Assembly (NCBI GenBank): GCA_964035545.1
Contig: OZ037771.1
Coordinates: forward strand, 9,800,480 to 9,864,479
From: Bugula neritina
Lineage: Eukaryota > Animalia > Bryozoa
Reading direction: 5' to 3'
Length of the DNA stretch: 64,000 bases
Positions 38,601-64,000 of this stretch are shown here, one piece after another. The stretch's first letter is position 1. Each line of letters begins with the position of its first letter. Position numbers and translations under genes: made by a program. The notes beneath the pieces are model-generated. The model did not search any database, was not told the DNA's origin, and saw only the letters and a list, made by a program, of their open reading frames with translations.

Positions 38601-39969
38601 CTGAAACACACTGAAACATACTGAAACATACTGAAATATATTGAAATATACTGAAATACACTGTAACACATTGAAAAATACTGCAACATACTGAAAGACA
38701 CTTCAACTCACTGAAGTATAGTGTAATTTATGGAAATGTACTGTAACATACTGATAATTACTGCAACACACTGAAATATACTGCAACATACTGAAATACA
38801 CTGTAACATACCAAAATAAACTGCAACATAATGCAACATACTGAATTACACTGTAACATACTAAATTACACTGCAACATTCTGCAACATACTTCAACGTA
38901 CTGAAATACACTGTAACATAATGAAATACACTGCGACATACTGCAACATACTGAAGTACACTGTAAAACATTGAAATACACTGCAACACATTGGAATATA
39001 CTGCAACATACCCAAATAACTGGTAATATACAGAAATATACTGAAATACACTGTAACACATTGCAAAAGACTGCAACATACTGAAAGACACTACAACTCA
39101 CTGAAGTACAGTGTATTATACGGAAATGTACTGTAACATACTGATATTTACTGCAACACACTGAAATATACTGCAACATACTGGAATACACTGTAACCTA
39201 CCATAAAAAACTGCAACATACTGCAACATAGTGAAATACACTGTAACATACTAAAATACACTGCAACATTCTGCAACATTCTTCTACATACTGAAAGACA
39301 CTGTAACATAATGAAATACACTGCAACACATTGAAATATACCGCAACACACTGGAATATACTGCAACACATCCAAGTACATCGTAATATACGGACATGTA
39401 CTGTAACATACTGAAACATACTGAAACAAACTGCAACATTCTGAAGTACACTGTAAAATATTGAAATACAATGCAACACATTGGAATATACTGCAACACA
39501 CTGAAGTTTACTGCAACAAACTGAAATATGCTGCAACATACTGAAACGTACTGCAACATACTGAAATTAATTGCAACATATCAAAGTATATCGTAATATA
39601 CGGACATGTACTGTAACATACTGAAACACACTGAAACATACTGAAACATACTGAAATATACTGAAATATACTGAAATACACTGTAACACATTGAAAAATA
39701 CTGCAACATACTGAAAGACACTTCAACTCACTGAAGTATAGTGTAATTTACGGAAATGTACTGTAACATACTGATAATTACTGCAACACACTGAAATATA
39801 CTGCAACATACTGAAATACACTGTAACATACCAAAATAAACTGCAACATAATGCAACATTCTGAGTTACACTGTAACATACTAAATTACACTGCAACATT
39901 CTGCAACATACTTCAACGTACTGAAATACACTGTAACATAATGAAATACACTGCAACATACTGCAACAT

Positions 39970-40135
39970 CACAGTTAGTTTAAGGTCATTACTTTCCAGA
40001 TTCAAGCACTGCTTTATGTTATATATAAACGGTTTCCAGGGGATAGCTCGAACAGTTTTTGTCTCACATTAATAAATTTTACATGAAAAGATGGCTCTTG
40101 CATTCCTCTTTCATATACTTTTTTAATTTTTCAAT
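39970..40135 (+). repeat. Left imperfect terminal inverted repeat of copy 1
   Basis: Blocks shared with the reverse complement of the right end, in order: terminal 20-mer, tgctttatgtt-tatat-aac, gatagctcgaacag (40042-40055), atgaaaagat, atatactttttta-ttttt. Confidence 0.85.
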
Positions 40136-40865
40136 AAAAAATTTTCTGAGAAAGTTGTTGCATAATAAGTAAAATTTTACACCCTCCATGTTCCACTGCT
40201 GTAGCACAGGGGATTTATTTTATAAAGTCTAAAAGTGAAACTTGACATTCCTTGATATGTTTTCTCTAATATACTTTCTTTGTTTTTTGAAATTCTGTTT
40301 ATGCTCTTCACAATTTGGTAAAAACATACACCATTATGCAAGTTTCACTGCAATTTTCTAAATTCTTCATATGGTGGTTCTAGCTACGCTCCTGTGACTA
40401 ATTATAACATCCCTAGTACGTTTGCTGCTCTGCGCGCTATCACAATAACATATAGTACCCTCTCGCACAAATTGGCAATCTATTGGATTTCTGCCAATAT
40501 AATGTTCCCTGTTTTACATTAGCACTTAGCTGAATCATCTCATTATGTTACAATCTATTGACAATGCCTCAGCACAACATAATTCTTTGTTTGTTTGGCA
40601 GAGTTAATTTCAGCTAAATCACTTCACTTTGCAGTCTTGTCAGTAAAGGTCTGTCTATATTGCAGCAGGTGTACTTCCAGTTTCTCTAATTCACATATGA
40701 TTATTTCAAGTACATTGTATTCTATAAGATCAATTTAAAGTTTAGCCCAGTGTTCAGTAGCTAAGTATTATGCATGTATGTTGTCTTACTGTTGAACAAA
40801 AGTTAAAAAACCTTTAAAATTATAGCCATATTTATTATACATGCATAGGATTTGCATAAGTTGAC

Positions 40866-40873
40866 AAAAAAAA
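40866..40873 (-). terminator. Oligo-dT (T8) Pol III terminator
   Basis: A8 on the + strand lies immediately 3' of the minus-strand tRNA-like unit and is conserved in copy 2. Confidence 0.6.
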
Positions 40874-40946
40874 TTGCAACATACTGGGATTGAACCATGA
40901 CCAACCAACTTCTCGCCGCCGCCTATAACCTCTGGACCACGCAGTC
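40874..40946 (-). ncRNA. tRNA-like Pol III unit inside transposon copy 1 (degenerate tRNA or SINE-head-like)
   Basis: Minus strand reads GACTGCG-TGGTCCAGAGG(A box)-TTATAGGCGGCGGCGAGAAGTTGGTTGGTCAT-GGTTCAATCCC(B box)-AGTATGTTGCAA-TTTTTTTT. It is 73 nt with tRNA-like box spacing. Acceptor and anticodon stems pair poorly, so it is not a functional tRNA. Confidence 0.7.
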
Positions 40947-41884
40947 ATCGTTAATAAATTGCCAACTATATGAGTAACTATCATTACATAAATATTTCGC
41001 GGCAAATGGGTTATAATTATTAGGCTGTCAATTCATGTTGATTAGCAGTGAACTGTTGCAATAGCCTCTGGTTACTAGCAAAGCTAATGGTTTTGAACAA
41101 ATAACCCAACAGTTTAAAAATAAGTAGCTTGCGTATTACTAGCTACAAAAACAGGTCTGAAATAGACTAATAAAGCAAGGTCTTATTGTAGAGTTTGCCG
41201 ATGTGCTCTAAAATAAAACTTAAACTGTATGGTATTACATGAGTATTTGTATGCGAGAGATAAATCAACAATACTGAGTTTCTGGAAAACAACATACTTG
41301 AAGTTAACTTTGACAATGGTGTGTTATTTTCATCATGCACTAGCACAGGTAGGGCCTATAGCATAAATCTCTAATCATATGAATCTTTATGAAGCCCACA
41401 GCTCATGTAAGGGTGGCAATGTAATTTGAAACTAAAAATTATGTTGCTGCATTGTGTCTAAGGTATATTAGAGAGCAGAATTTAATTTTACTAGCCTACC
41501 CCAACGGCATTCTACAATGCAGCTTATATGCTGGCAGTTGTAATAAGTACTGTCAACAGCAAGGTTACTATCACTGCTAGCTCTGTGCAGTATGTAACCT
41601 CTTGAATAATTGCGCCAATTTTAAACTCTTGGAAGTTGGCCAAGTTATCATATCGCAGCCAGCCACCGGAGACAAAGCATCAGAGCTATTCATATAATAT
41701 TATACTGATGCACTTGGTAGCAAATGTGGCTAATCTAATATAGTTCATAGTTCAACACCCTTTACTTTGGGAATACAGCCTCTTTTTTTAGGTTTACCTA
41801 ACAAAGCATGAAAATATCTAAACTGATATTCTGATAATTTAGAGGTAAATTTTGAAAACTAGGTTAATTGCACTTGTTTGCACA

Positions 41885-41980
41885 ACAACAATAATAAAAT
41901 ATATATTATGCAGTATAATAAAAACACACATAATACTATAATATAATATATTATAATGATAATAATATAATATTATAAGT
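41885..41980. repeat. AT-rich (AAT)n-like low-complexity tract inside the element
   Basis: ataataaaat...ataatgataataatataatattataag; also present in copy 2 at ~45460-45550. Confidence 0.6.
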
Positions 41981-42369
41981 ACCATTACTGCATTTTATAA
42001 CTAGGATGGTTGCCGAAAAAATGTTTCACAAATTCTGTAATTATACATCAAAAATAGAACTAGCTAGGCAGCAGGTTAGAATAGAGTAAATTTTTAAAAC
42101 ATGAAATCATGATTTGACTATCGTTTTATTTAGGCCAACCAACCTAGGAATACAAGATTGGGTTTTAGCTGACAGTTTATAACATTTAGCTTTTGAGCCA
42201 GCAGCACTGGCACTTGTAAAGTATAGGCAAAGTTAGTGAAGCGAGACTAACGAGCACTCAAATACAAGGCATATTGAGACACAATAACAAGTCAGGAGCG
42301 TATAAATTAAAAAGAATGTGGAAGGGGGACTATATTTTTCAACACGCTATAACTTAAACATGAATTGGC

Positions 42370-42545
42370 TTTTGAAAAAAATAAAAAAGTATATTGGAGA
42401 ACATAAGTTTCTTTATCTTTTCATATTTTTTTTGTTCTTGTGACATTCAACCTGTTCGAGCTATCAGTGGAACATTGTTCATATAGAACATAAAGCACCT
42501 GGCAAAGAGCCAGAAAATGAAAAGTATGACCTTAAACCAACTGTG
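42370..42545 (-). repeat. Right imperfect terminal inverted repeat of copy 1
   Basis: ctgttcgagctatc (42452-42465) is the exact reverse complement of 40042-40055. Ends in gaccttaaaccaactgtg. Confidence 0.85.
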
Positions 42546-43543
42546 ATACTGAAGTACACTGTAAAATATTAAAATACACTGCAACACATTGGAATATACT
42601 GCAACACACTGAAATATACTGTAACATACTGAAACATGAGCAATATACTGAAAGATGCCTCAACATACTCAAATACACTGCAACACATTGAAATACACTG
42701 CAACATACTGAAATATACTGCAACATACTGAAATGTACTTCAACATAATGAAAAACACTGCAACATATCAAAGTATGTTGTAATATACAGACATGTACTG
42801 AAACATACTGAAACATACTGAAATACACTGCAACAAGTTGGAATATACTGCAACATACCCAAGTATATGGTAATATAATGAAATATACTGCAACATACCG
42901 CAGCATACTGAAAAACACTGTAACAAACTGAAATACGCTGCAACACATTGGAATATACTGCAACATACCCAAATAAATGGTAATATACTGAAATATACTG
43001 AAATACACTGTAACACATTGAAAAATACTGCAACATACTGAAACACACTACAACTCACTGAAGTATAGTGTAACTTACCGAAATGTACTGTAACATACTG
43101 ATATTTACTGCAACACACTGAAACATACTGCAACATACTGAAATACACTGTTACATACTAAAATCCACTGCAACATACTAAAATACACTGCAACATTCTG
43201 CAACATTCTGCAACATACTTCAACATACTGAAATACACTGTAACAAACTGAAATACGCTGCAATACATTGGAATATACTGCAACAAACCCAAATAAATGG
43301 TAACATACTGAAATATACTGAAATACATTGTAACACATTGAAAAATACTGCAACACACTGAAAGACACTACAACTCACTGAAGTATAGTGTAATATACGA
43401 AAATGTACTGTAACATACTGATATTTACTGCAACACACTGAAATATACTGCAACATACTGTATACACTGTTACATGCCAAAATAAACTGCAACATACTGC
43501 AACATACTGAAATACACTGTAACATACTCAAATACACTGCAAC
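42546..43543. repeat. 998-bp satellite segment between the two transposon copies
   Basis: Same 10-bp monomers. Near-identical to 47091-48088 (offset 4,545; ORFs 42740/47285 and 43105/47650). Confidence 0.97.
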
Positions 43544-46118
43544 CACAGTTGGTTTAAGGTCATTACTTTCCAGATTCAGGCACTGCTTTATGTTATATAT
43601 AAACGGTTTCCAGGGGATAGCTCGAACAGTTTTTGTCTCACATTAACAAATTTTACATGAAAAGATAGCTCTTGCATTCCTCTTTCATATACTTTTTTAA
43701 TTTTTCAATAAAATTTTTTTTGAAAAAGTTGTTGCATAATAAGTAAAATTTTACACCCTCCATGTTCCACTGCTGTAGCACAGGGGATTCATTTTATAAA
43801 GTATAAAAGTGAAACTTGACATTCCTTGATATGTTTTCTCTAATATACTTTCTTTGTTTTTTGAAATTCTGTTTATGCTCTTCACAATTTGGTAAAAACA
43901 TACACCATTTTGCAAGTTTCACTGCAATTTTCTAAATTCTTCATATGGTGGTTCTAGCTACGCTCCTGTGACTAATTATAACATTCCTAGTACGTTTGCC
44001 GCTCTGCGCTATCACAATAACATATAGTACCCTCTCGCACAAATTGGCAGTCTATTGGATTTCTGCCAATATAATGTTCCCTGTTTTACATTAGCACTTA
44101 GCTGAATCATCTCACTATGTTACAATAATATATTGAAAATGCCTCAGCACAACATAATTCTTTGTTTGTTTGGCAGAGTTAATTTCAGCTAAATCACTTC
44201 ACTTTGCAGTCTTGTCAGTAAAGGTCTGTCTATAGAGCAGCAGGTGTACTTTCAGTTTCTCTAATTCACATATGATTATTTTAAGTACATTGTATTCTAT
44301 AAGATCAATTTAAGGTTTAGTCCAGTGTTCAGTATCTAATTATTATGCATGTATGTTGTCTTACTGTTGAACAAAAGTTAAAAAAAAACTTTACAATTAT
44401 AGCCATATTTATTATACATGCGTAGGATTTGCATAAGTTGACAAAAAAAATTGCGACAAAACAGGGTTGAACCATAACCAACGAACTCCTCGCTGACGCC
44501 TCTAACCTCTAGACCACGCAGTCATCGTTAATAATACGCGCACTATATGAGTAACTATCATTACATAAATATTTCGCGGCAAAAGGGTTATAATTATTAG
44601 GCTGTCAATTCATGTTGATAGCAGTCAACTGTTGCAATAGTCTCGGGTTACTAGCAAAGCTAATGGTTTTGAACAAATAACCCAAAAGTTTAAAAATAAG
44701 TAGCTTGCGTATTACTAGCTACAAAAACAGGTCTGAAATAGACTGGTAAAGCAAGCTCTTATTGTAGAGTTTGCAGATGTGCTCTAAAATAAAACTTAAA
44801 CTGTATGGTATTACATAAGTATTTGTATGCGAGAGATAAATGGACATTACTGAGTTTCTGGAAAACAACATACTTGAAGTTAACTTTGACAATGGTGTGT
44901 TATTTTCATCATACACTAGCACAGATAGGGCCTATAGCATAAATCTCTAATCATATGAATCTTTATGAAGCCCACAGCTCATGTAAGGGTGGCAAATGTA
45001 ATTTGAAACTAAAAATTATGTTGCTGCATTTTGTCTAAGGTATATTAGAGAGCAGAATTTGGTTTTACTAGCCTGCCCCAACGGCATTCTACAATGCAGC
45101 TTATATGCTGGCAGTTGTAATAAGTACTGCCAATAGCAAGGTTACTATCACTGCTAGCTCTGTGCAGTATGTAACCTCTTGAATAATTGCGCCAATTTTA
45201 AACTCTTGGAAGTTGGCCAAGTTATCATATCGCAGCCAGCCACCGGAGACAAAGCATCAGAGCTATTCATATAATATTATACTGATGCACTTGGTAGCAG
45301 AGTGGCTAATCTAATATAGTTCATAGTTCAACACCCTTTACTTTGGGAATACAGCCTCTTTTTTTAGGTTTACCTTACAAAGCATGAACATATCTAAACT
45401 GATATTCTGATAATTTAGAGGTACATTTTGAAAACTAGGTTAATTGCACTTGTTTGCACAACAACAATAATAAATTAGATATTATGCAGGATAATAAAAA
45501 CACACATAATACTATATAATATATTATAATGATAATAATATAATATTATAAGTACCATTACTGCATTTTATAAATTACATGGTTGCCAAAAAAATGTATC
45601 ACAAATTTTGTAATTATACATCAAAAATAGAACTAGCTAGGCAGCAGGTTAGAATAGAGTAAATTTTTAAAACATGAAATCATGATTTGACTATTGTTTT
45701 ATTTAGGCCAACCAACCTAGGAATACAAGATTGGGTTTTAGCTGACAGTTTATAACATTTAGCTTTTGAGCCAGCAGCACTGGCACTTGTGAAGTATAGG
45801 CAAAGTTAGTGAAGCGAGACTAACAAGCACTCAAATACAAGGCATATTGAGACACAATAACAAGTCAGGAGCGTATAAATTGAAAAGAATGTGGAAGGGG
45901 GACTATGTTTTTCAACAAGCTATAACTTAAACATGAATTGGCTTTTGAAAAAAATAAAAAAGTATATTGGAGAACATAAGTTTCTTTATCTTTTCATATT
46001 TTTTTTGTTCCTGTGACATTCAACCTGTTCGAGCTATCAGTGGAACATTGTTCATATAGAACATAAAGCACCTGGCAAAGAGCCAGAAAATGAAAAGTAT
46101 GACCTTAAACCAACTGTG
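43544..46118 (+). mobile_element. Non-autonomous TIR DNA transposon, copy 2 (2,575 bp), same family and orientation, 2-bp TSD AC
   Basis: Begins CACAGTTGGTTTAAGGTCAT and ends ATGACCTTAAACCAACTGTG (20/20). Flanks are ctgcaAC|element|ACattctgcaac, and the empty site actcaaatacactgcaACattctgcaac is present at ~48071-48098 and ~63771-63798. Colinear with copy 1 over the full length. Confidence 0.93.
44451..44523 (-). ncRNA. tRNA-like Pol III unit inside transposon copy 2
   Basis: Minus strand reads GACTGCG-TGGTCTAGAGG-TTAGAGGCGTCAGCGAGGAGTTCGTTGGTTAT-GGTTCAACCC-TGTTTTGTCGCAA-T8. A D-stem GTCT/AGGC can pair, as can a central hairpin TCAGCGA/TCGTTGG. T8 is at 44443-44450. Confidence 0.7.
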
Positions 46119-48569
46119 ACATTCTGCAACATATTGAAATATACTGCAACACACTGAAATATACTGCAACACACTGAAATATACTGCAAAATACTGAAAT
46201 ACACTTCAACATACTGCAACATACTGAAAGACACTACAACTCACTGAAGTATAGTGCAATATACAGAAATGTACTCTAACATACTGATATTTAATGTTAC
46301 ACACTGACATATACTACAAAATAATGAAATACACTGTAACATACCGAAATAAGCTGCAACATACTGCAACATACTGAAATACACTGCAACATTCTGCAAC
46401 ATACTTCAACATACTGAAATATACTGTAACATAATGAAATACACTGCAGCACATTGAAATATACTGCAACATACTGAAATGTACTGCAACATACTGAAAT
46501 ACACTGCAACATATTGAAGTATATTGTAATACGCGGACATGTACTGTAACATACTGAAACACACTGAAACAATCTGAAACATACTGAAACATACTGAAAC
46601 ATACTGAAATACACTGCAACATACTGCAACATACTGAAACGTACTGTAACATTATGAAATACACTGCAACACATTGAAATATACTGCAACAAACTGAAAT
46701 ATACTGCAACATACTAAAACGTACTGCAACATACTGAAATACATTGCAACATATCGAAGTATATCGTAATATACGGACATGTACTGAAACATACTGAAAC
46801 ACACTGAAACATACTGAAACATACTGAAATATACTGAAACATACTGAAATACACTGTAACACATTGAAAAATACTGCAACATACTGAAAGACACTTCAAC
46901 TCACTGAAGTATAGTGTAATTTACGGAAATGTACTGTAACATACTGATAATTACTGCAACACACTGAAATATACTGCAACATACTGAAATACACTGTAAC
47001 ATACTAAATTACACTGCAACATTCTGCAACATACTTCAACGTACTGAAATACACTGTAACATAATGAAATACACTGCAACATACTGCAACATACTGAAGT
47101 ACACTGTAAAATATTAAAATACACTGCAACACATTGGAATATACTGCAACACACCGAAATATACTGTAACATACTGAAACATGAGCAATATACTGAAAGA
47201 TGCCTCAACATACTCAAATACACTGCAACACATTGAAATACACTGCAACATACTGAAATATACTGCAACATACTGAAATGTACTTCAACATAATGAAAAA
47301 CACTGCAACATATCAAAGTATGTTGTAATATACAGACATGTACTGAAACATACTGAAACATACTGAAATACACTGCAACAAGTTGGAATATACTGCAACA
47401 TACCCAAGTATATGGTAATATAATGAAATATACTGCAACATACCGCAGCATACTGAAAAACACTGTAACAAACTGAAATACGCTGCAACACATTGGAATA
47501 TACTGCAACATACCCAAATAAATGGTAATATACTGAAATATACTGAAATACACTGTAACACATTGAAAAATACTGCAACATACTGAAACACACTACAACT
47601 CACTGAAGTATAGTGTAACTTACCGAAATGTACTGTAACATACTGATATTTACTGCAACACACTGAAACATACTGCAACATACTGAAATACACTGTTACA
47701 TACTAAAATCCACTGCAACATACTAAAATACACTGCAACATTCTGCAACATTCTGCAACATACTTCAACATACTGAAATACACTGTAACAAACTGAAATA
47801 CGCTGCAATACATTGGAATATACTGCAACAAACCCAAATAAATGGTAACATACTGAAATATACTGAAATACATTGTAACACATTGAAAAATACTGCAACA
47901 CACTGAAAGACACTACAACTCACTGAAGTATAGTGTAATATACGAAAATGTACTGTAACATACTGATATTTACTGCAACACACTGAAATATACTGCAACA
48001 TACTGTATACACTGTTACATGCCAAAATAAACTGCAACATACTGCAACATACTGAAATACACTGTAACATACTCAAATACACTGCAACATTCTGCAACAC
48101 ACTTCAACGAACTGAAAGACACTGTAACATAATGAAATACACTGCAACACATTGAAATATACCGCAACAGACTGGAATATACTGCAACACAACCAAGTAC
48201 ATCGTAATATACGTACATGTACTGTAACATACTTGAACATACTGAAACATACTGCAACATTCTGAAGTACACTGTAAAATATTGAAATACACTGCAACAA
48301 ACTGCAACATACTGAAGTGCACTGTACATATTGAAAAACACTGCAACACACTGAAAAATACTGCAACACACTGAAATATACCGCACAATACTGAATTATA
48401 CTTCAACATACTGCAACATACTGAAAGACACTACAACTCACTGAAGTATAGTGCAATATACAGGAATGTACTCTAACATACTGATATTTAATGTTACACA
48501 CTGAAATATAGTACAGCATACTGAAATACACTGCAACATACCGAAATAAGCTGCAACATTCTGCAACAT

Positions 48570-49900
48570 ACTGAAGTACACTGTAACATGATGTAGTACA
48601 CTGCAACACATTGAAATATACTGCAACAAACTGAAATATACTGCAACATACTGAAATGTACTGCAACATACTGAAATACATTGCAACATATCGAAGTATA
48701 TCGTAATAAACGAACATGTACTGTAACATACTGAAACACACTGAAACAATCTGAAACATACTGAAACATACTGAAACATACTGAAATACACTGCAACATA
48801 CTGCAACATACTGAAACATACTGTAACATTATGAAATACACTGCAACACATTGAAATATACTGCAACAAACTGAAATATACTGCAACATACTAAAACGTA
48901 CTGCAACATACTGAAATACATTGCAACATATCGAAGTATATCGTAATATACGGACATGTACTGAAACATACTGAAACATACTGAAACATACTGAGATACA
49001 CTGCAACATACTGCAACATACTGAAGTACACTGTAACATGATGAAATACACTGCAACACATTGAATTATACTGCAACAAACTGAAATATACTGCAACATA
49101 CTGAAATGTACTGCAACATACTGAAATACATTGCAACATATCGAAGTATATCGTAATAAACGAACATGTACTGTAACATACTGAAACACACTGAAACAAT
49201 CTGAAACATACTGAAACATACTGAAACATACTGAAATACACTGCAACATACTGCAACATACTGAAACATACTGTAACATTATGAAATACACTGCAACACA
49301 TTGAAATATACTGCAACAAACTGAAATATACTGCAACATACTAAAACGTACTGCAACATACTGAAATACATTGCAACATATCGAAGTATATCGTAATATA
49401 CGGACATGTACTGAAACATACTGAAACATACTGAAACATACTGAGATACACTGCAACATACTGCAACATACTGAAGTACACTGTAACATGATGAAATACA
49501 CTGCAACACATTGAATTATACTGCAACAAACTGAAATATACTGCAACATACTGAAATGTACTGCAACATGCTGAAATACATTGCAACATATCGAAGTATA
49601 TTGTAATAAACGGACATGTACTGTAACATACTGAAACACACTGAAACATACTGAAACATACTGAAACATACTGAAACATACTGAAATACAGTGCAACATA
49701 CTGAAACATACTGTAACATTATGAAATGCACTGCGACACATTGAAATATACTGCAACAAACTGAAATATACTGCAACATACTAAAACGTACTGCAACATA
49801 CTGAAATACATTGCAACATATCGAAGTATATCGTAATATACGGACATGTACTGAAACATACTGAAACATACTGAAACATACTGAGATACACTGGAACATA
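48570..49900. repeat. ~450-bp higher-order unit, about 3 tandem copies
   Basis: ORF offsets 48829/49279 and 48891/49341 (450). Boundaries are approximate. Confidence 0.75.
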
Positions 49901-49909
49901 CTGCAACAT

Positions 49910-52900
49910 ACTGAAATACACTGCAACACATTGAAATATACTACAACAAACTGAAATATACTGCAACATACTGAAACGTACTGCAACATACTGAAATACA
50001 TTGCAATATATCGAAGTATGTCGTAATATACGGACATGTACTGTAACATACTGAAACACACTGAAACATACTGAAACATACTGAAATATACTGAAATATA
50101 CTGAAATACACTGTAACACATTGAAAAATACTGCAACATACTGAAAGACACTTCAACTCACTGAAGTATAGTGTAATTTACGGAAATGTACTGTAACATA
50201 CTGATAATTACTGCAACACACTGAAATATACTGCAACATACTGAAATACACTGTAACATACCGAAATAAACTGCAACATAATGCAACATACTGAATTACA
50301 CTGTAACATACTAAATTACACTGCAACATTCTGCAACATACTTCAACGTACTGAAATACACTGTAACATAATGAAATACACTGCAACATACTGCAACATA
50401 CTGAAGTACACTGTAAAATATTAAAATACACTGCAACACATTGGAATATACTGCAACACACTGAAATATACTGTAACATACTGAAACATGAGCAATATAC
50501 TGAAAGATGCCTCACCATACTCAAATACACTGCAACACATTGAAATACACTGCAACACACTGAAATATACTGCAACATACTGAAATGTACTTCAACATAA
50601 TGAAAAACACTGCAACATATCAAAGTATGTTGTAATATACAGACATGTACTGAAGCATACTGAAACATACTGAAATACACTGCAACAAGTTGGAATATAC
50701 TGCAACATACCCAAGTATATGGTAATATAATGAAATATACTGCAACATACCGCAACATACTGAAAAACACTGAAACAAACTGAAATACGCTGCAACACAT
50801 TGGAATATACTGCAACATACCCAAATAAATGGTAATATACTGAAATATACTGAAATACACTGTAACACATTGAAAAATACTGCAACATACTGAAACACAC
50901 TACAACTCACTGAAGTATAGTGTAACTTACTGAAATGTACTGTAACATACTGATATTTACTGCAACACACTGAAACATACTGCAACATACTGAAATACAC
51001 TGTTACATACTAAAATACACTGCAACATACTAAAATACACTGCAACATTCTGCAACATTCTGCAACAAACTTCAACATAATGAAATACACTGTAACAAAC
51101 TGAAATACGCTGCAACACATTGGAATATACTGCAACATACCCAAATAAATGGTAACATACTGAAATATACTGAAATACACTGTAACACATTAAAAAATAC
51201 TGCAACATACTGAAAGACACTTCAACTCACTGAAGAATAGTGTAATATACAGAAATGTACTGTAACATACTGATATTTACTGTAACACACTGAAATATAC
51301 TGCGACATACTGAAATACACTGTAACATACCGAAATAAACTGCAACATAATGCAACATACTGAATTACACTGTAACATACTAAAATACACTGCAAAATTC
51401 TGCAACACACTTCAACGAACTGAAAGACACTGTAACATAATGAAATACACTGCAACACATTGAAATATACTGCAACAAACTGAAATACGCTGCAACACAT
51501 TGGAATATACTGCAACATATCCCAATAAATGGTAATATACTGAAATATATTGAAATACACTGTAACACATTGAAAAATACTGCAACATACTGAAACACAC
51601 TACAACTCACTGAAGTATAGTGTAACTTACTGAAATGTACTGTAAAATACTGATATTTACTGCAACACACTGAAACATACTGCAACATACTGAAATACAC
51701 TGTTACATACTAAAATACACTGCAACATACTAAAATACACTGCAACAATCTGCAACATTCTGCAACATACTTCAACATACTGAAATACACTGTAACAAAC
51801 TGAAACACGCTGCAACACATTGGAATATACTGCAACATACCCAAATAAATGGTAACATACTGAAATATACTGAAATACAATGTAACACATTGAAAAATAC
51901 TGCAACACACTGAAAGACACTACAACTCACTGAAGTATAGTGTAATATACAAAAACGTACTGTAACATAGTGATATTTACTGCAACACACTGAAATATAC
52001 TGCAACATACTGAAATACACTGTTACATGCCAAAATAAACTGCAACATACTGCAACATACTGCAACATACTGAAATACACTGTAACATACTAAAATACAC
52101 TGCAAAATTCTGCAACACACTTCAACGAACTGAAAGACACTGTAACATAATGAAATACACTGCAACACATTGAAATATACTGCAACAAACTGAAATATAC
52201 TGCAACATACTAAAACGTACTGCAACATACTGAAATACATTGCAACATATCGAAGTATATCGTAATATACGGACATGTACTGAAACATACTGAAACATAC
52301 TGAAACATACTGAGATACACTGCAACATACTGCAACATACTGAAGTACACTGTAACATGATGAAATACACTGCAACACATTGAAATATACTGCAACAAAC
52401 TGGAATATACTGCAACATACTGGATCGTACTGCAACATACTGAAAAACATTGCAATATATCGAAGTATGTCGTAATATACGGACATGTACTGTAACATAC
52501 TGAAACACACTGATACATACTGAAACATACTGAAATATACTGAAATATACTGAAATACACTGTAACACATTGAAAAATACTGCAACATACTGAAAGACAC
52601 TTCAACTCACTGAAGTATAGTGTAATTTATGGAAATGTACTGTAACATACTGATAATTACTGCAACACACTGAAATATACTGCAACATACTGAAATACAC
52701 TGTAACATACCGAAATAAACTGCAACATAATGCAACATACTGAATTACACTGTAACATACTAAATTACACTGCAACATTCTGCAACATACTTCAACGTAC
52801 TGAAATACACTGTAACATAATGAAATACACTGCAACATACTGCAACATACTGAAGTACACTGTAAAATATTAAAATACACTGCAACACATTGGAATATAC

Positions 52901-53915
52901 TGCAACACACTGAAATATACTGTAACATACTGAAACATGAGCAATATACTGAAAGATGCCTCACCATACTCAAATACACTGCAACACATTGAAATACACT
53001 GCAACACACTGAAATATACTGCAACATACTGAAATGTACTTCAACATAATGAAAAACACTGCAACATATCAAAGTATGTTGTAATATACAGACATGTACT
53101 GAAGCATACTGAAACATACTGAAATACACTGCAACAAGTTGGAATATACTGCAACATACCCAAGTATATGGTAATATAATGAAATATACTGCAACATACC
53201 GCAACATACTGAAAAACACTGTAACAAACTGAAATACGCTGCAACACATTGGAATATACTGCAACATACCCAAATAAATGGTAATATACTGAAATATACT
53301 GAAATACACTGTAACACATTGAAAAATACTGCAACATACTGAAACACACTACAACTCACTGAAGTATAGTGTAACTTACTGAAATGTACTGTAACATACT
53401 GATATTTACTGCAACACACTGAAACATACTGCAACATACTGAAATACACTGTTACATACTAAAATACACTGCAACATACTAAAATACACTGCAACATTCT
53501 GCAACATTCTGCAACATACTTCAACATACTGAAATACACTGTAACAAACTGAAATACGCTGCAACACATTGGAATATACTGCAACATACCCAAATAAATG
53601 GTAACATACTGAAATATACTGAAATACACTGTAACACATTAAAAAATACTGCAACATACTGAAAGACACTTCAACTCACTGAAGAATAGTGTAATATACA
53701 GAAATGTACTGTAACATACTGATATTTACTGTAACACACTGAAATATACTGCAACATACTGAAATACACTGTAACATACCGAAATAAACTGCAACATAAT
53801 GCAACATACTGAATTACACTGTAACATACTAAAATACACTGCAAAATTCTGCAACACACTTCAACGAACTGAAAGACACTGTAACATAATGAAATACACT
53901 GCAACACATTGAAAT
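49910..53915. repeat. Duplicated block at 2,449-bp offset (~49910-51465 and ~52360-53915)
   Basis: ORF pairs 50153/52602, 50592/53041, 50957/53406 and 51222/53671. Confidence 0.8.
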
Positions 53916-56551
53916 ATACCGCAACAGACTGGAATATACTGCAACACATCCAAGTACATCGTAGTATACGGACATGTATCGTAACATACTTGAACATACT
54001 GAAACATACTGCAACATTCTGAAGTACACTGTAAAATATTGAAATACACTGCAACAAACTGCAACATACTGAAGTGCACTGTACATATTGAAAAACACTG
54101 CAACACACTGAAAAATACTGCAACACACTGAAATATACCGCACAATACTGAATTATACTTCAACATACTGCAACATACTGAAAGACACTACAACTCACTG
54201 AAGTATAGTGCAATATACAGAAATGTACTCTAACATACTGATATTTGATGTTACACACTGAAATATAGTACAGCATACTGAAATACACTGCAACATACCG
54301 AAATAAGCTGCAACATTCTGCAACATACTGAAATACACTGTAACATGATGTAGTACACTGCAACACATTGAAATATACTGCAACAAACTGAAATATACTG
54401 CAACATACTGAAATGTACTGCAACATACTGAAATACATTGCAACATATCGAAGTATATCGTAATAAACGAACATGTACTGTAACATACTGAAACACACTG
54501 AAACAATCTGAAACATACTGAAACATACTGAAACATACTGAAATACACTGCAACATATTGCAACATACTGAAACATACTGTAACATTATGAAATACACTG
54601 CAACACATTGAAATATACTGCAACAAACTGAAATATACTGCAACATACTAAAACGTACTGCAACATACTGAAATACATTGCAACATATCGAAGTATATCG
54701 TAATATACGGACATGTACTGAAACATACTGAAACATACTGAAACATACTGAGATACACTGCAACATACTGCAACATACTGAAGTACACTGTAACATGATG
54801 AAATACACTGCAACACATTGAAATATACTGCAACAAACTGAAATATACTGCAACATACTGAAACGTACTGCAACATACTGAAATTAATTGCAACATATCG
54901 AAGTATATCGTAATATACGGACATGTACTGTAACATACTGAAACACACTGAAACATACTGAAACATACTGAAACATACTGAAACATACTGAGATACACTG
55001 CAACATACTGCAACATACTGAAAAACACTGTAACATGATGAAATACGCTGCAACACATTGAAATATACTGCAACAAACTGAATTATACCGCAACATACTG
55101 AAACGTGCTGCAACATAATGAAATACACTGCAACACATTGAAATATACCGCAACAGACTGGAATATACTGCAACACATCCAAGTACATTGTAATATACGG
55201 ACATGTACTGTAACATACTGAAACACACTGAAACATACTGAAACATACTGAAATGTACTGAAATATACTGAAATACACTGTAACACATGGAAAAATACTG
55301 CAACATACTGAAAGCCACTTCAACTCACTGAAGTATAGTGTAATATACGGAAATGTACTGTAACATACTGATATTTGCTGTAACACACTGAAATATACTG
55401 CAACATACTGAAATACACTGTAACATACCGAAATAAACTGCAACATAATGCAACATACTGAATTACGCTGTAACATACTAAAATACACTGCAACATTCTG
55501 CAACATACTGCAACATACTGAAATACACTGTAACATGATGAAGTATAGTGCAATATACAGAAATGTACTCTAACATAATGATGTTTAATGTTACACACTG
55601 AAATATACTGCAACACACTGAAATATACTGCAAAATACTGAATTATACTTCAACATACTGCAACATACTGAAAGACACCACAACCCACTGAAGTATAGTG
55701 CAATATACAGAAATGTACTCTAACATACTGATATTTAATGTTACACACTGAAATATACTACGACATACTGAAATACACTGCAACATACCGAAATAAGCTG
55801 CAACATACTGCAACATACTGAAATACACTGTAACATGATGTAGTACACTGCAACACATTGAAATATACTGCAACAAACTGAAATATACTGCAACATACTG
55901 AAATGTACTGCAACATACTGAAATACATTGCAACATATCGAAGTATATCGTAATAAACGGACATGTACTGTAACATACTGAAACACACTGAAACATACTG
56001 AAACATACTGAAACATACTGAAACATACTGAAATACACTGCAACATACTACAACATACTGAAACATACTGTAACATTATGAAATACACTGCAACACATTG
56101 AAATATACTGCAACAAACTGAAATATACTGCAACATACTAAAACGTACTGCAACATACTGAAATACATTGCAATATATCGAAGTATATCGTAATATATGG
56201 ACATGTACTGTAACATACTGAAACACACTGAAACATACTGAAACATACTGAAATATACTGAAATATACTGAAATACACTGTAACACATTGAAAAATACTG
56301 CAACATACTGAAAGACACTTCAACTCACTGAAGAATAGTGTAATATACAGAAATGTACTGTAACATACTGATATTTACTGTAACACACTGAAATATACTG
56401 CAACATACTGAAATACACTGTAACATACCGAAATAAACTGCAACATAATGCAACATACTGAATTACACTGTAACATACTAAAATACACTGCAACATTCTG
56501 CAACATACTTCAACGAACTGAAAGACACTGTAACATAATGAAATACACTGC

Positions 56552-59500
56552 AACACATTGAAATATACCGCAACAGACTGGAATATACTGCAACACATCC
56601 AAGTACATCGTAATATACGGACATGTACTGTCACATACTGGAACATACTGAAACATACTGCAACATTCTGAAGTACTCTGTAAAATATTGAAATACACTG
56701 CAACAAACTGCAACATACTGAAGTACACTGTACATATTGAAAAACACTGCAACACACTGAAATATACTGCAACACACTGAAATATACCGCACAATACTGA
56801 ATTATACTTCAACATACTGCAACATACTGAAAGACACTACAACTCACTGAAGTATAGTGCAATATACAGAAATGTACTCTAACATACTGATATTTAATGT
56901 TACACACTGAAATATACTACAACATACTGAAATACACTGCAACATACCGAAATAAACTGCAACATAATGCAACATACTGAATTACGCTGTAACATACTAA
57001 AATACACTGCAACATTCTGCAACATACTGCAACATGCTGAAATACACTGTAACATGATGAAGTATAGTGCAATATATAGAAATGTACTCTAACAAAATTA
57101 TATTTAATGTTACACACTGAAATATACTGCAACACACTGAAATATACTGCAAAATACTGAATTATACTTCAACATACTGCAACATACTGAAAGACACCAC
57201 AACCCACTGAAGTATAGTGCAATATACAGAAATGTACTCTAACATACTGATATTTAATGTTACACACTGAAATATACTACAACATACTGAAATACACTGC
57301 AACATACCGAAATTAGCTGCAACATACTGCAACATACTGAAATACACTGTAACATGATGTAGTACACTGCAACACATTGAAATATACTGCAACAAACTGA
57401 AATATACTGCAACATACTGAAATGTACTGCAACATACTGAAATACATTGCAACATATCGAAGTATATCGTAATAAACGGACATGTACTGTAACATACTGA
57501 AACACACTGAAACATACTGAAACATACTGAAACATACTGAAACATACTGAAATACACTGCAACATACTACAACATACTGAAACATACTGTAACATTATGA
57601 AATACACTGCAACACATTGAGATATACTGCAACAAACTGAAATATACTGCAACATACTAAAACGTACTGCAACATACTGAAATACATTGCAATATATCGA
57701 AGTATATCGTAATATACGGACATGTACTGTAACATACTGAAACACACTGAAACATACTGAAACATACCGAAATATACTGAAATGTACTGAAATACACTGT
57801 AACACATTGAAAAACACTGCAACATACTGAAAGACACTTCAACTCACTGAAGAATAGTGTAATATACAGAGATGTACTGTAACATACTGATATTTACTGT
57901 AACACACTTAAATATACTGCAACATACTGAAATACACTGTAACATACCGAAATAAACTGCAACATAATGCAACATACTGAATTACACTGTAACATACTAA
58001 AATACACTGCAACATTTTGCAACATACTTCAACGAACTGAAAGACACTGTAACATAATGAAATACACTGCAACACATTGAAATATACCGCAACAGACTGG
58101 AATATACTGCAACACATCCAAGTACATCGTAATATACGGACATGTACTGTAACATACTGGAACATACTGAAACATACTGCAACATTCTGAAGTACACTGC
58201 AAAATATTGAAATACACTGCAACAAACTGCAACATACTGAAGTACACTGTACATATTGAAAAACACTGCAACACACTGAAATATACTGCAACACACTGAA
58301 ATATACCGCACAATACTGAATTATACTTCAACATACTGCAACATACTGAAAGACACTACAACTCACTGAAGGATAGTGCAATATACAGAAATGTACTGTA
58401 ACATACTGATATTTAATGTTACACACTGAAATATACTACAACATACTGAAATACACTGCAACATACCGAAATAAGCTGCAACATTCTGCAATATACTGAA
58501 ATACACTGTAACATGATGTAGTACACTGCAACACATTGAAATATTCTGCAACAAACTGAAATATACTGCAACATACTGAAATGTACTGCAACATACTGAA
58601 ATACATTGCAACATATCGAAGTATATCGTAATAAACGAACATGTACTGTAACATACTGAAACACACTGAAACAAACTGAAACATACTGAAATATACTGAA
58701 ATATACTGTAACACATTGAAAAATACTGCAACATACTGAAAGACACTTCAACTCACTGAAGTATAGTGTAATTTACGGAAATGTACTGTAACATACTGAT
58801 AGTTACTGCAACACACTGAAATATACTGCAACATACTGAAATACACTGTAACATACCGAAATAAACTGCAACATAATGCAACATACTGAATTACACTGTA
58901 ACATACTAAATTACACTGCAACATTCTGCAACATACTTCAACGTACTGAAATACACTGTAACATAATGAAATACACTGCAACATACTGCAACATACTGAA
59001 GTACACTGTAAAATATTAAAATACACTGCAACACATTGGAATATACTGCAACACACTGAAATATACTGTAACATACTGAAACATGAGTAATATACTGAAA
59101 GATGCCTCAACATACTCAAATACACTGCAACACATTGAAATACACTGCAACACACTGAAATATACTGCAACACACTGAAATGTACTTCAACATAATGAAA
59201 AACACTGCAACATATCAAAGTATGTTGTTATATACAGACATGTACTGAAACATACTGAAACATACTGAAATACACTGCAACAAGTTGGAATATACTGCAA
59301 CATACCCAAGTATATGGTAATATAATGAAATATACTGCAACATACCGCAACATATTGAAAAACACTGTAACAAACTGAAATACGCTGCAACACATTGGAA
59401 TATACTGCAATATACCCAAATAAATGGTAATATACTGAAATATACTGAAATACACTGTAACACATTGAAAAATACTGCAACATACTGAAACACACTACAA

Positions 59501-62500
59501 CTCACTGAAGTATAGTGTAACTTACTGAAACATACTGCAACATACTGAAATACACTGTTACATACTAAAATACACTGCAACATACTAAAATACACTGCAA
59601 CATTCTGCAACATTCTGCAACATACTTCAACATACTGAAATACACTGTAACAAACTGAAATACGCTGCAACACATTGGAATATACTGCAACATATCCCAA
59701 TAAATGGTAATATACTGAAATATATTGAAATACACTGTAACACATTGAAAAATACTGCAACATACTGAAACACACTACTACTCACTGAAGTATAGTGTAA
59801 CTTACTGAAATGTACTGTAAAATACTGATATTTACTGCAACACACTGAAACATACTGCAACATACTGAAATACACTGTTACATACTAAAATACACTGCAA
59901 CATACTAAAATACATTGCAACAATCTGCAACATTCTGCAACATACTTCAACATACTGAAATACACTGTAACAAACTGAAACACGCTGCAACACATTGGAA
60001 TATACTGCAACATACCCAAATAAATGGTAACATACTGAAATATACTGAAATACAATGTAACACATTGAAATATACCGCAACAGACTGGAATATACTGCAA
60101 CACATCCAAGTACATCGTAATATACGGACATGTACTGTCACATACTGGAACATACTGAAACATACTGCAACATTCTGAAGTACTCTGTAAAATATTGAAA
60201 TACACTGCAACAAACTGCAACATACTGAAGTACACTGTACATATTGAAAAACACTGCAACACACTGAAATATACTGCAACACACTGAAATATACCGCACA
60301 ATACTGAATTATACTTCAACATACTGCAACATACTGAAAGACACTACAACTCACTGAAGTATAGTGCAATATACAGAAATGTACTCTAACATACTGATAT
60401 TTAATGTTACACACTGAAATATACTACAACATACTGAAATACACTGCAACATACCGAAATAAACTGCAACATAATGCAACATACTGAATTACGCTGTAAC
60501 ATACTAAAATACACTGCAACATTCTGCAACATACTGCAACATGCTGAAATACACTGTAACATGATGAAGTATAGTGCAATATATAGAAATGTACTCTAAC
60601 AAAATTATATTTAATGTTACACACTGAAATATACTGCAACACACTGAAATATACTGCAAAATACTGAATTATACTTCAACATACTGCAACATACTGAAAG
60701 ACACCACAACCCACTGAAGTATAGTGCAATATACAGAAATGTACTCTAACATACTGATATTTAATGTTACACACTGAAATATACTACAACATACTGAAAT
60801 ACACTGCAACATACCGAAATTAGCTGCAACATACTGCAACATACTGAAATACACTGTAACATGATGTAGTACACTGCAACACATTGAAATATACTGCAAC
60901 AAACTGAAATATACTGCAACATACTGAAATGTACTGCAACATACTGAAATACATTGCAACATATCGAAGTATATCGTAATAAACGGACATGTACTGTAAC
61001 ATACTGAAACACACTGAAACATACTGAAACATACTGAAACATACTGAAACATACTGAAATACACTGCAACATACTACAACATACTGAAACATACTGTAAC
61101 ATTATGAAATACACTGCAACACATTGAGATATACTGCAACAAACTGAAATATACTGCAACATACTAAAACGTACTGCAACATACTGAAATACATTGCAAT
61201 ATATCGAAGTATATCGTAATATACGGACATGTACTGTAACATACTGAAACACACTGAAACATACTGAAACATACCGAAATATACTGAAATGTACTGAAAT
61301 ACACTGTAACACATTGAAAAACACTGCAACATACTGAAAGACACTTCAACTCACTGAAGAATAGTGTAATATACAGAGATGTACTGTAACATACTGATAT
61401 TTACTGTAACACACTTAAATATACTGCAACATACTGAAATACACTGTAACATACCGAAATAAACTGCAACATAATGCAACATACTGAATTACACTGTAAC
61501 ATACTAAAATACACTGCAACATTTTGCAACATACTTCAACGAACTGAAAGACACTGTAACATAATGAAATACACTGCAACACATTGAAATATACCGCAAC
61601 AGACTGGAATATACTGCAACACATCCAAGTACATCGTAATATACGGACATGTACTGTAACATACTGGAACATACTGAAACATACTGCAACATTCTGAAGT
61701 ACACTGCAAAATATTGAAATACACTGCAACAAACTGCAACATACTGAAGTACACTGTACATATTGAAAAACACTGCAACACACTGAAATATACTGCAACA
61801 CACTGAAATATACCGCACAATACTGAATTATACTTCAACATACTGCAACATACTGAAAGACACTACAACTCACTGAAGGATAGTGCAATATACAGAAATG
61901 TACTGTAACATACTGATATTTAATGTTACACACTGAAATATACTACAACATACTGAAATACACTGCAACATACCGAAATAAGCTGCAACATTCTGCAATA
62001 TACTGAAATACACTGTAACATGATGTAGTACACTGCAACACATTGAAATATTCTGCAACAAACTGAAATATACTGCAACATACTGAAATGTACTGCAACA
62101 TACTGAAATACATTGCAACATATCGAAGTATATCGTAATAAACGAACATGTACTGTAACATACTGAAACACACTGAAACAAACTGAAACATACTGAAATA
62201 TACTGAAATATACTGTAACACATTGAAAAATACTGCAACATACTGAAAGACACTTCAACTCACTGAAGTATAGTGTAATTTACGGAAATGTACTGTAACA
62301 TACTGATAGTTACTGCAACACACTGAAATATACTGCAACATACTGAAATACACTGTAACATACCGAAATAAACTGCAACATAATGCAACATACTGAATTA
62401 CACTGTAACATACTAAATTACACTGCAACATTCTGCAACATACTTCAACGTACTGAAATACACTGTAACATAATGAAATACACTGCAACATACTGCAACA

Positions 62501-63577
62501 TACTGAAGTACACTGTAAAATATTAAAATACACTGCAACACATTGGAATATACTGCAACACACTGAAATATACTGTAACATACTGAAACATGAGTAATAT
62601 ACTGAAAGATGCCTCAACATACTCAAATACACTGCAACACATTGAAATACACTGCAACACACTGAAATATACTGCAACACACTGAAATGTACTTCAACAT
62701 AATGAAAAACACTGCAACATATCAAAGTATGTTGTTATATACAGACATGTACTGAAACATACTGAAACATACTGAAATACACTGCAACAAGTTGGAATAT
62801 ACTGCAACATACCCAAGTATATGGTAATATAATGAAATATACTGCAACATACCGCAACATATTGAAAAACACTGTAACAAACTGAAATACGCTGCAACAC
62901 ATTGGAATATACTGCAATATACCCAAATAAATGGTAATATACTGAAATATACTGAAATACACTGTAACACATTGAAAAATACTGCAACATACTGAAACAC
63001 ACTACAACTCACTGAAGTATAGTGTAACTTACTGAAACATACTGCAACATACTGAAATACACTGTTACATACTAAAATACACTGCAACATACTAAAATAC
63101 ACTGCAACATTCTGCAACATTCTGCAACATACTTCAACATACTGAAATACACTGTAACAAACTGAAATACGCTGCAACACATTGGAATATACTGCAACAT
63201 ATCCCAATAAATGGTAATATACTGAAATATATTGAAATACACTGTAACACATTGAAAAATACTGCAACATACTGAAACACACTACTACTCACTGAAGTAT
63301 AGTGTAACTTACTGAAATGTACTGTAAAATACTGATATTTACTGCAACACACTGAAACATACTGCAACATACTGAAATACACTGTTACATACTAAAATAC
63401 ACTGCAACATACTAAAATACATTGCAACAATCTGCAACATTCTGCAACATACTTCAACATACTGAAATACACTGTAACAAACTGAAACACGCTGCAACAC
63501 ATTGGAATATACTGCAACATACCCAAATAAATGGTAACATACTGAAATATACTGAAATACAATGTAACACATTGAAA
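56552..63577. repeat. 3,507-bp tandem duplication (two essentially identical copies)
   Basis: Constant offset of 3,507 (56917/60424, 58748/62255, 59627/63134) with identical translations. The junction is near 60059-60070. Confidence 0.92.
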
Positions 63578-64000
63578 AATACTGCAACACACTGAAAGAC
63601 ACTACAACTCACTGAAGTATAGTGTAATATACAAAAACGTACTGTAACATAGTGATATTTACTGCAACACACTGAAATATACTGCAACATACTGAAATAC
63701 ACTGTTACATGCCAAAATAAACTGCAACATACTGCAACATACTGCAACATACTGAAATACACTGTAACATACTCAAATACACTGCAACATTCTGCAACAT
63801 ATTGAAATATACTGCAACACACTGAAATATACTGCAACACATCCAAGTAGACTGTAATATACGGACATGTACTGTAACATACTGAAACAAAATGAAATAT
63901 ACTGTAACACTCTGAGTAATACTGCAAAATGCTGAAATATACGGTAACACAGTGAAGTATACTGCAAAATTCTGAAACATACTGCAACATAGTAAAACAT

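Follow-up and report, generated by a model that had tools for sequence, protein, structure and literature searches.

Two copies of a non-autonomous DNA transposon in the window, which is the whole 64-kb stretch of Bugula neritina DNA analysed here, carry on the minus strand a 73-nt unit with the anatomy of a type-2 RNA polymerase III (Pol III) promoter, followed immediately by a run of eight T. We consider it probable, at roughly 0.6, that Pol III factors bind this cassette and that many of its copies are transcribed in the germline. The signs of transcription are indirect and comprise a hypermutation footprint like that of tRNA genes, a strand asymmetry and one RNA-like chimera.

The features of the two copies and of their surroundings are given below in window coordinates. 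Positions in the cassette are counted along the minus strand from +1, and -1 is the base preceding +1.

28 to 39969, then 42546 to 43543 and 46119 to 63991, no strand: satellite array with a 10-bp basic unit, ACTGCAACAT and ACTGAAATAT types
39968 to 39969, no strand: target site duplication (TSD) of copy A, AT, 2 bp; second copy at 42546 to 42547
39970 to 42545, plus strand: copy A, a non-autonomous DNA transposon of 2,576 bp, with sharp ends common to 20 further full-length copies
39970 to 39989, plus strand: left terminal inverted repeat (TIR), beginning CACAG; a perfect 20 bp with its partner at 42526 to 42545
40866 to 40873, minus strand: T8, Pol III terminator-like, adjoining the unit, +74 to +81
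40874 to 40946, minus strand: copy A, body of the putatively tRNA-derived cassette, 73 nt, with +1 at 40946
40886 to 40896, minus strand: B box, GGTTCAATCCC, +51 to +61
40929 to 40939, minus strand: A-box-like sequence (A box), TGGTCCAGAGG, +8 to +18
40947 to 40965, minus strand: hypervariable 5' flank, -1 to -19, with its peak at -14 to -10
40966 to 40972, minus strand: TATA-like CATATAG, -26 to -20, a cold island between two hot stretches
43542 to 43543 and 46119 to 46120: TSD of copy B, AC
43544 to 46118, plus strand: copy B of the same transposon, 97% identical to copy A
44443 to 44523, minus strand: cassette of copy B (unit 44451 to 44523, A box 44506 to 44516, B box 44463 to 44473, T8 44443 to 44450)

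The window is composed largely of satellite DNA. Tandem Repeats Finder gives periods of 10, 20, 30, 230 and 250 across 28-63991, and the strong, uniform GC and AT skew of the satellite is broken solely at 39970-42545 and 43544-46118, the positions of the two transposon copies. The ends of the transposon read CACAG...CTGTG, with imperfect inverted similarity reaching to about 120 bp, past the perfect 20-bp TIR, and the list of open reading frames contains none of 60 or more amino acids inside it. Twenty further genomic copies were fetched with wide flanks, giving 22 with copies A and B. Each of the 20 spans the full element (positions 1-2576), with 95-99.7% identity to copy A. The flanking dinucleotides are identical in 20 of the 22 copies, which indicates a 2-bp TSD; its sequence varies (TA, CA, AA, TT, AT, AC, TG, TC, AG and CG) and is thus non-specific. 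The DNA-transposon carrier that had been proposed from the sequence-only reading is confirmed by this combination of TIR, TSD and uniform full length. Because their TSDs differ (AT and AC), we read copies A and B as separate insertions. Tandem duplication is an unlikely origin for the pair, as both the TSDs and the registers of the flanks differ.

CACTA/Mirage/Chapaev (CMC) elements, in the classification of Yuan and Wessler from 2011, are said to have TIRs beginning with CAC and TSDs of 2-4 bp. We place the family with CMC because its termini start with CAC and its TSD is 2 bp, and these features mark the carrier as a real non-autonomous cut-and-paste transposon of CMC type. A search for an autonomous partner with the Pfam RAG1 family (PF12940) gave no match in the genome and none in 14 control genomes either, and is uninformative. 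A 25-mer in the flank adjoining the cassette has 210 matches in the genome and a 17-mer over the A box has at least 313; the family comprises at least 300 copies.

The left flank can be read in 31 copies. Seven of these sit in the ACTGNAA-type 10-bp satellite that makes up the window, in both orientations (the copies at 39970 and 43544 of the window, together with L002, L012, L022, L025 and L028). They could reflect a target preference or better survival in satellite DNA. The other 24 copies lie outside this satellite, which leaves little support for the earlier suggestion of a role specific to the satellite array.

Both copies in the window show type-2 Pol III anatomy, with an A box at about +8, a B box 30-60 nt downstream and a terminator of at least four T. 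The layout noted previously (A box at +8, B box at tRNA spacing, T8, all on the minus strand) is identical in copies A and B. The absence of a poly-A tail, a SINE body and a TSD belonging to the 73-nt unit itself, also noted previously, agrees with the sequence at the copy A locus, where none of the three is seen. The strict B-box pattern GGTTCRANNCC has one match in the 64-kb window against 0.00 expected from 100 shuffles, and the cassette recurs in all of the approximately 130 copies examined, which together rule out a chance motif. In an alignment of 110 copies the A box, the B box and a run of at least six T are all intact in 96, and the T-run is kept at this length in all 110.

The unit is not a tRNA gene. 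ARAGORN finds no tRNA gene in the window or at six other loci, and the Rfam tRNA model (RF00005) has no match, even at E<=10, to either unit of the window or to 20 further copies from other subfamilies. By our own reading of the sequence, the acceptor stem can pair at one of its seven positions. The minimum free energy is no better than that of shuffled sequences, with z of +1.8 for copy A and -0.8 for copy B. The consensus from alifold over 73-78 distinct versions of the unit has an energy of -6.8 kcal/mol and a single weak helix of 8 bp; neither a convincing conserved RNA fold nor real covariation was found among these versions. This helix, the sole kept pairing, joins +6..+14 with +44..+51 (window 40941-40933 with 40903-40896). 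Its two common variants, C13T and C48T, both change a G-C pair to a G-U wobble, which is weak evidence for the helix because C>T is also the commonest change. The description of the unit as tRNA-like therefore stands as regards promoter anatomy and fails as regards tRNA structure, for which ARAGORN, Rfam and the fold are all negative. On present sequence evidence the unit is best described as a putative tRNA-derived type-2 Pol III promoter and terminator cassette that has lost its cloverleaf. Its D-arm presumably resembles that of several tRNAs.

An abundant tRNA-derived SINE of about 220-240 bp is present in the genome, with at least 3,177 first-look candidates. Examples are found at L024:2860-3110 (minus strand) and L024:2590-2815 (plus strand), and neither receives an ARAGORN call. 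The cassette and the SINE head have in common an A-box segment (19 of 22 bases, with one gap) and a GGTCAT-GGTTC segment. The middle of the cassette does not align with the SINE, and the SINE body and tail are absent from the cassette. The similarity is confined to sequence adjacent to the boxes, and a fragment of the abundant SINE is ruled out as a recent origin. We also sampled 24 A-box matches that lack the flank 25-mer, of which 20 were fetched and four were checked by coordinates alone. Older copies of the element account for 19 of the 20 fetched matches, at 91-94% identity and in one case with an internal deletion, and for 23 of the 24 when those checked by coordinates are counted. The cassette is thereby shown to be a fixed internal part confined to this transposon family. 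The alternative that a SINE fragment had been caught in the founder element, raised by the sequence-only reading, is not borne out as far as a recent SINE piece is concerned.

The pattern of mutation around the cassette is the main evidence for its activity. From the family of at least 313 copies, 110 were aligned over the unit and 400 nt on each side. Changes were counted by Fitch parsimony on maximum-likelihood trees built from all columns or from the flanks only, with the caveat that trees of transposon copies are imperfect. The numbers of changes per site are as follows.

Flanks: 0.5-0.8
-41 to -28: 2.4-2.7
8-site window with the TATA-like heptamer: 1.0
-19 to -1: 6-8, with a five-site peak of 10.2 at -14 to -10
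+1 to +7: about 3
A box: 0.7-1.0
+20 to +51: 2.5-3.0
B box: 2.4 (1.3 minus its N position)
+63 to +73: 2.5-3.3
T8: 0.6, the background level
Downstream of the T-run: an immediate return to 0.6-0.8, with 0.7-0.8 over the first 40 nt

The unit outside the boxes has about 2.7 changes per site. When 19-nt windows are compared, the maximum is 33 changes outside the patch and 115 inside it. Between copies A and B the segment that bears the cassette is 91% identical, against 96-98% for most other segments. The hot stretch begins upstream of the TATA-like element, peaks 10-14 nt before +1, takes in the body apart from the internal promoter and ends at the T-run. Very hot single sites are also present at about -29, -31, -35 and -37 (window 40976-40984), with 4-15 independent changes each; they are non-CpG sites and lie upstream of the TATA-like heptamer amid otherwise invariant sequence. 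The element has other variable windows, at 41275-41400 and 41965-42070. These consist of subfamily indels and fixed differences, which rules out hypermutation there.

Over the whole element, CpG sites take about five times as many changes as other sites, and no part of it is richer in CpG than the unit. Non-CpG sites are nevertheless raised 12-fold at -19..-1 and 3.5-5.5-fold elsewhere in the patch outside the A box and T-run, so CpG decay is ruled out as the sole cause. Terminal and internal branches show an equally large excess of changes in the patch. For this reason we reject a reading in which the patch evolves neutrally and the remaining element is constrained, a reading that would also need purifying selection on 2.5 kb of non-coding sequence in dead-end copies. 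Gene conversion from SINE heads is likewise ruled out; the hottest stretch is the 5' flank, which is absent from SINEs, and the 19 sites at -19..-1 hold 41 minor alleles, most hot sites having several different ones. The changes differ between the strands. On the sense strand C>T occurs 3.2 times per C and G>A 1.5 times per G, whereas in the flanks the two are equal (0.54 and 0.53).

The boxes behave differently from the sequence that surrounds them in the unit. Positions +7..+21 form the coldest 12-15-nt window of the patch, with 0.7 changes per site, and per site the A box has fewer changes than the rest of the unit (Mann-Whitney p 2.5e-4), at a level no different from that of the flanks. 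For the A box, the B box and the remainder of the unit, inherited changes (those on internal branches) come to 0.13, 0.40 and 1.38 per site, respectively. The terminal-branch values are 0.53 per site for the A box and 1.6 for the B box, against 1.35 for the neighbours of the latter. Singletons make up 14 of the 19 minor alleles in the boxes compared with 17 of the 70 found elsewhere in the unit (Fisher p 2e-4, independent of any tree), a contrast that is inflated because recurrent hits at hot sites raise alleles above singleton frequency. Set against the flanks, where 125 of 291 minor alleles are singletons, the difference is weaker (roughly p 0.01, our own estimate). The common variants in the boxes are confined to two positions that the box consensus leaves free. 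The sequence-only reading had named neutral decay of the boxes as the outcome that would tell against it, and this is not what the copies display, the A box being the coldest part of the patch and the box variants being mostly singletons. Compared with the flanks across the 110 copies, the A box and T8 sit at the background rate. On terminal branches the B box changes at the rate of its neighbours.

Transcribed nuclear tRNA genes show a closely similar footprint. The inner 5' flank is their most divergent part, and in each of the species studied the peak falls 12-15 nt upstream. The effect scales with transcriptional activity, and an excess of transitions typical of deamination of the non-template strand persists when CpG sites are set aside (Thornlow et al. 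2018, PMC6130373). It is because the footprint of the cassette fits that of such genes that we read the cassette as probably transcribed. Like active tRNA genes it has A and B boxes at tRNA spacing, a T-run, a hypermutable 5' flank with its peak 10-15 nt upstream, an excess of transitions and a conserved internal promoter. It differs from them in having no cloverleaf, no tRNA-model score and no anticodon arm, and its body varies outside the boxes, whereas the bodies of tRNA genes are conserved.

At one locus (L131:1989-3245, G000:C4:4950234-4951490) the unit stands on its own, joined to a LINE. The unit part, with the solitary copy at C4:4950246, begins at about -8 and stops at the first T4 run (+66), where it joins the last 1,185 nt of the LINE with a TT overlap. 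A reverse-transcriptase ORF lies in the LINE part, whose 3' end (L131:3245) is established from about 40 other copies. Sequence of the transposon continues on neither side of this locus. The TSD is ambiguous (possibly TAGAT), and weak collinear similarity further upstream is non-significant (p about 0.07). The locus looks like a template-switch chimera of the U6/L1 type, as a single case, and it fits a Pol III primary transcript that would start a few bases before +1 and end at the first oligo-T. As in U6/L1 chimeras, a small piece the size of a Pol III-type RNA ends in oligo-T and is joined head-to-tail to a 5'-truncated LINE. Unlike them it is known from one instance with an ambiguous TSD, and it bears on the expression of the unit and not on its nature.

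The strongest competitor to transcription is an inert relic, a tRNA pseudogene or an old SINE head that was caught once in the founder element. The hot spot would then be unrelated to Pol III and could arise, for example, from sequence context, from error-prone gap-repair synthesis during transposition or from non-B DNA, and the boxes would merely be cold sites. The lack of a tRNA-model match and of a stable fold agrees with such a relic, as do the heat of CpG sites throughout the element, the CpG richness of the unit and a B box that is no colder than its neighbours on terminal branches. A relic does not account for the 3.5-12-fold rise at non-CpG sites outside the A box and T-run, nor for a patch that begins upstream of the TATA-like element, stops exactly at the T-run and peaks where tRNA genes peak. 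The C>T excess is specific to one strand, the one predicted to be sense; subfamily indels explain the element's other variable windows; and the box variants are skewed towards singletons. We therefore think this explanation unlikely, and a transcribed cassette the better account of the same observations.

The cassette could instead be a binding site for TFIIIC, with or without TFIIIB, that is not productively transcribed and resembles the ETC, B-box and tDNA barriers; pausing of replication forks would then cause the local mutagenesis, and the site would form a chromatin boundary, much like the barrier suggested in the sequence-only reading. That the A and B boxes are the constrained parts, and that seven of the 31 copies with a readable flank are satellite insertions of either orientation, would suit such a site. 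A pure TFIIIC site has no need of the T8 and the TATA-like element, however, and both are held at the background rate, and actual transcription is indicated both by the C>T asymmetry of the sense strand and by the RNA-like chimera at L131, which makes a site of this kind quite improbable. An origin from a second mobile element nested in the founder, as the head of the abundant SINE or as the solo LTR of a Helenus-type TRIM, would be compatible with any functional reading and appears slightly less probable still. The segments shared with the SINE would be expected of it, and TG...CA can be read at -1 and +72 of the unit. Against this origin, the middle of the unit has no alignment to the SINE, and neither a SINE body, tail or TSD nor a 4-5-bp direct repeat flanking the unit is seen. 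Two LTRs would leave A-box matches in pairs separated by a few hundred bases, and no such pairs occur among the matches listed. A distant common origin with the SINE, or with a Helenus-type solo LTR, is conceivable from the sequence.

We favour the following account of a cassette transcribed by Pol III. The cassette keeps what would be its working parts, namely the TATA-like element at about -25, the A box, the B box at tRNA spacing and the T8 terminator. TFIIIC and TFIIIB would assemble on many copies in the germline, and Pol III would transcribe an RNA of 70-85 nt from about -12 or -8 to the first T-run. The unwound and transcribed stretch would mutate 5-20 times faster than the remaining element, and those lineages that were still transposing would have kept the A box, the B box and the terminator intact. 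Since inherited changes in the boxes are in deficit, transposing lineages seem to have needed intact boxes, and this suggests that the binding of Pol III factors, or transcription, may aid propagation of the element. Our leading guess for the benefit is open or insulated chromatin around the element, in keeping with the sequence-only reading, and another candidate at which we can guess is replication-fork pausing that couples transposition to S phase. More tentatively, the Pol III cassette may be an adaptive organ of the transposon. TFIIIC, TFIIIB and Pol III would keep the chromatin open or insulated, or would time replication-coupled transposition, and copies with intact boxes would out-propagate others and could settle in satellite DNA. 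We regard this extension as possible and clearly less secure than transcription itself.

Several other mobile elements are associated with Pol III promoters. The Cassandra, Helenus and Ajax TRIMs are LTR retroelements that contain Pol III modules derived from 5S or tRNA genes (PMC10886601). In common with the cassette carrier they are non-SINE mobile elements with a Pol III promoter derived from a small-RNA gene, in which boxes and terminator are kept and the fold is non-functional. They differ in being retroelements, in which the transcript is the transposition intermediate and the module is present in both LTRs, whereas the carrier transposes as DNA by cut and paste and has just one module, in its interior. 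We know of no need for a Pol III transcript in a cut-and-paste element. The heads of tRNA-derived SINEs, like the cassette, are degenerate tRNAs that keep Pol III promoter function alone; the cassette differs from them in having no LINE-derived tail, poly-A or TSD, and it is a passenger spread by a DNA transposase.

Non-autonomous CMC elements, including CACTA elements that carry gene fragments, are similar to the carrier in having CAC termini, a 2-bp TSD, no transposase of their own and foreign internal sequence. The cargo of the gene-fragment carriers is a decaying piece of a Pol II gene, whereas the cargo here appears to be a complete small transcription unit with signs of both activity and constraint. 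MITEs are usually viewed as being without a Pol III promoter, as one paper on them states (PMC3879986). A full-text literature search returned no cut-and-paste DNA transposon family with a conserved, apparently active internal Pol III unit.

tDNA and B-box sites act as heterochromatin barriers in fission-yeast centromeres and at budding-yeast HMR. The cassette resembles the tDNA, B-box and ETC barriers in having a TFIIIC-binding box architecture in or beside repetitive, heterochromatin-like DNA. It is unlike them in that most of its copies lie outside satellite DNA.

The components of this system are each known, namely CMC transposons, tRNA-derived Pol III promoters and the hypermutation of tRNA genes. 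If the cassette is transcribed, its more than 300 near-identical Pol III units, placed in different chromatin contexts that include satellite, would constitute a natural experiment on Pol III-linked mutagenesis, on the boundary function of TFIIIC and on position effects. It would also mean that DNA transposons, and not retroelements alone, can recruit Pol III promoters for their own benefit, and that Pol III activity in non-model animals could be predicted from this footprint with nothing more than a genome sequence. Were the cassette in addition an adaptive organ, it would be a cut-and-paste counterpart of Cassandra and Helenus, and its spread would have given the genome over 300 additional Pol III units active in the germline, and mutation hot spots with them.

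Two further loci are of note. One copy of the transposon (L111, G000:C1:1867909-1869125) has an internal deletion of element positions 433-892, which puts the left end of the element beside the T-run of the cassette and cuts the T-run to five. A small contig contains at least nine tRNA genes in 4.2 kb (G000:C214:41188-45349), and this group may derive from an organelle or a contaminant, or may be a nuclear tRNA cluster.
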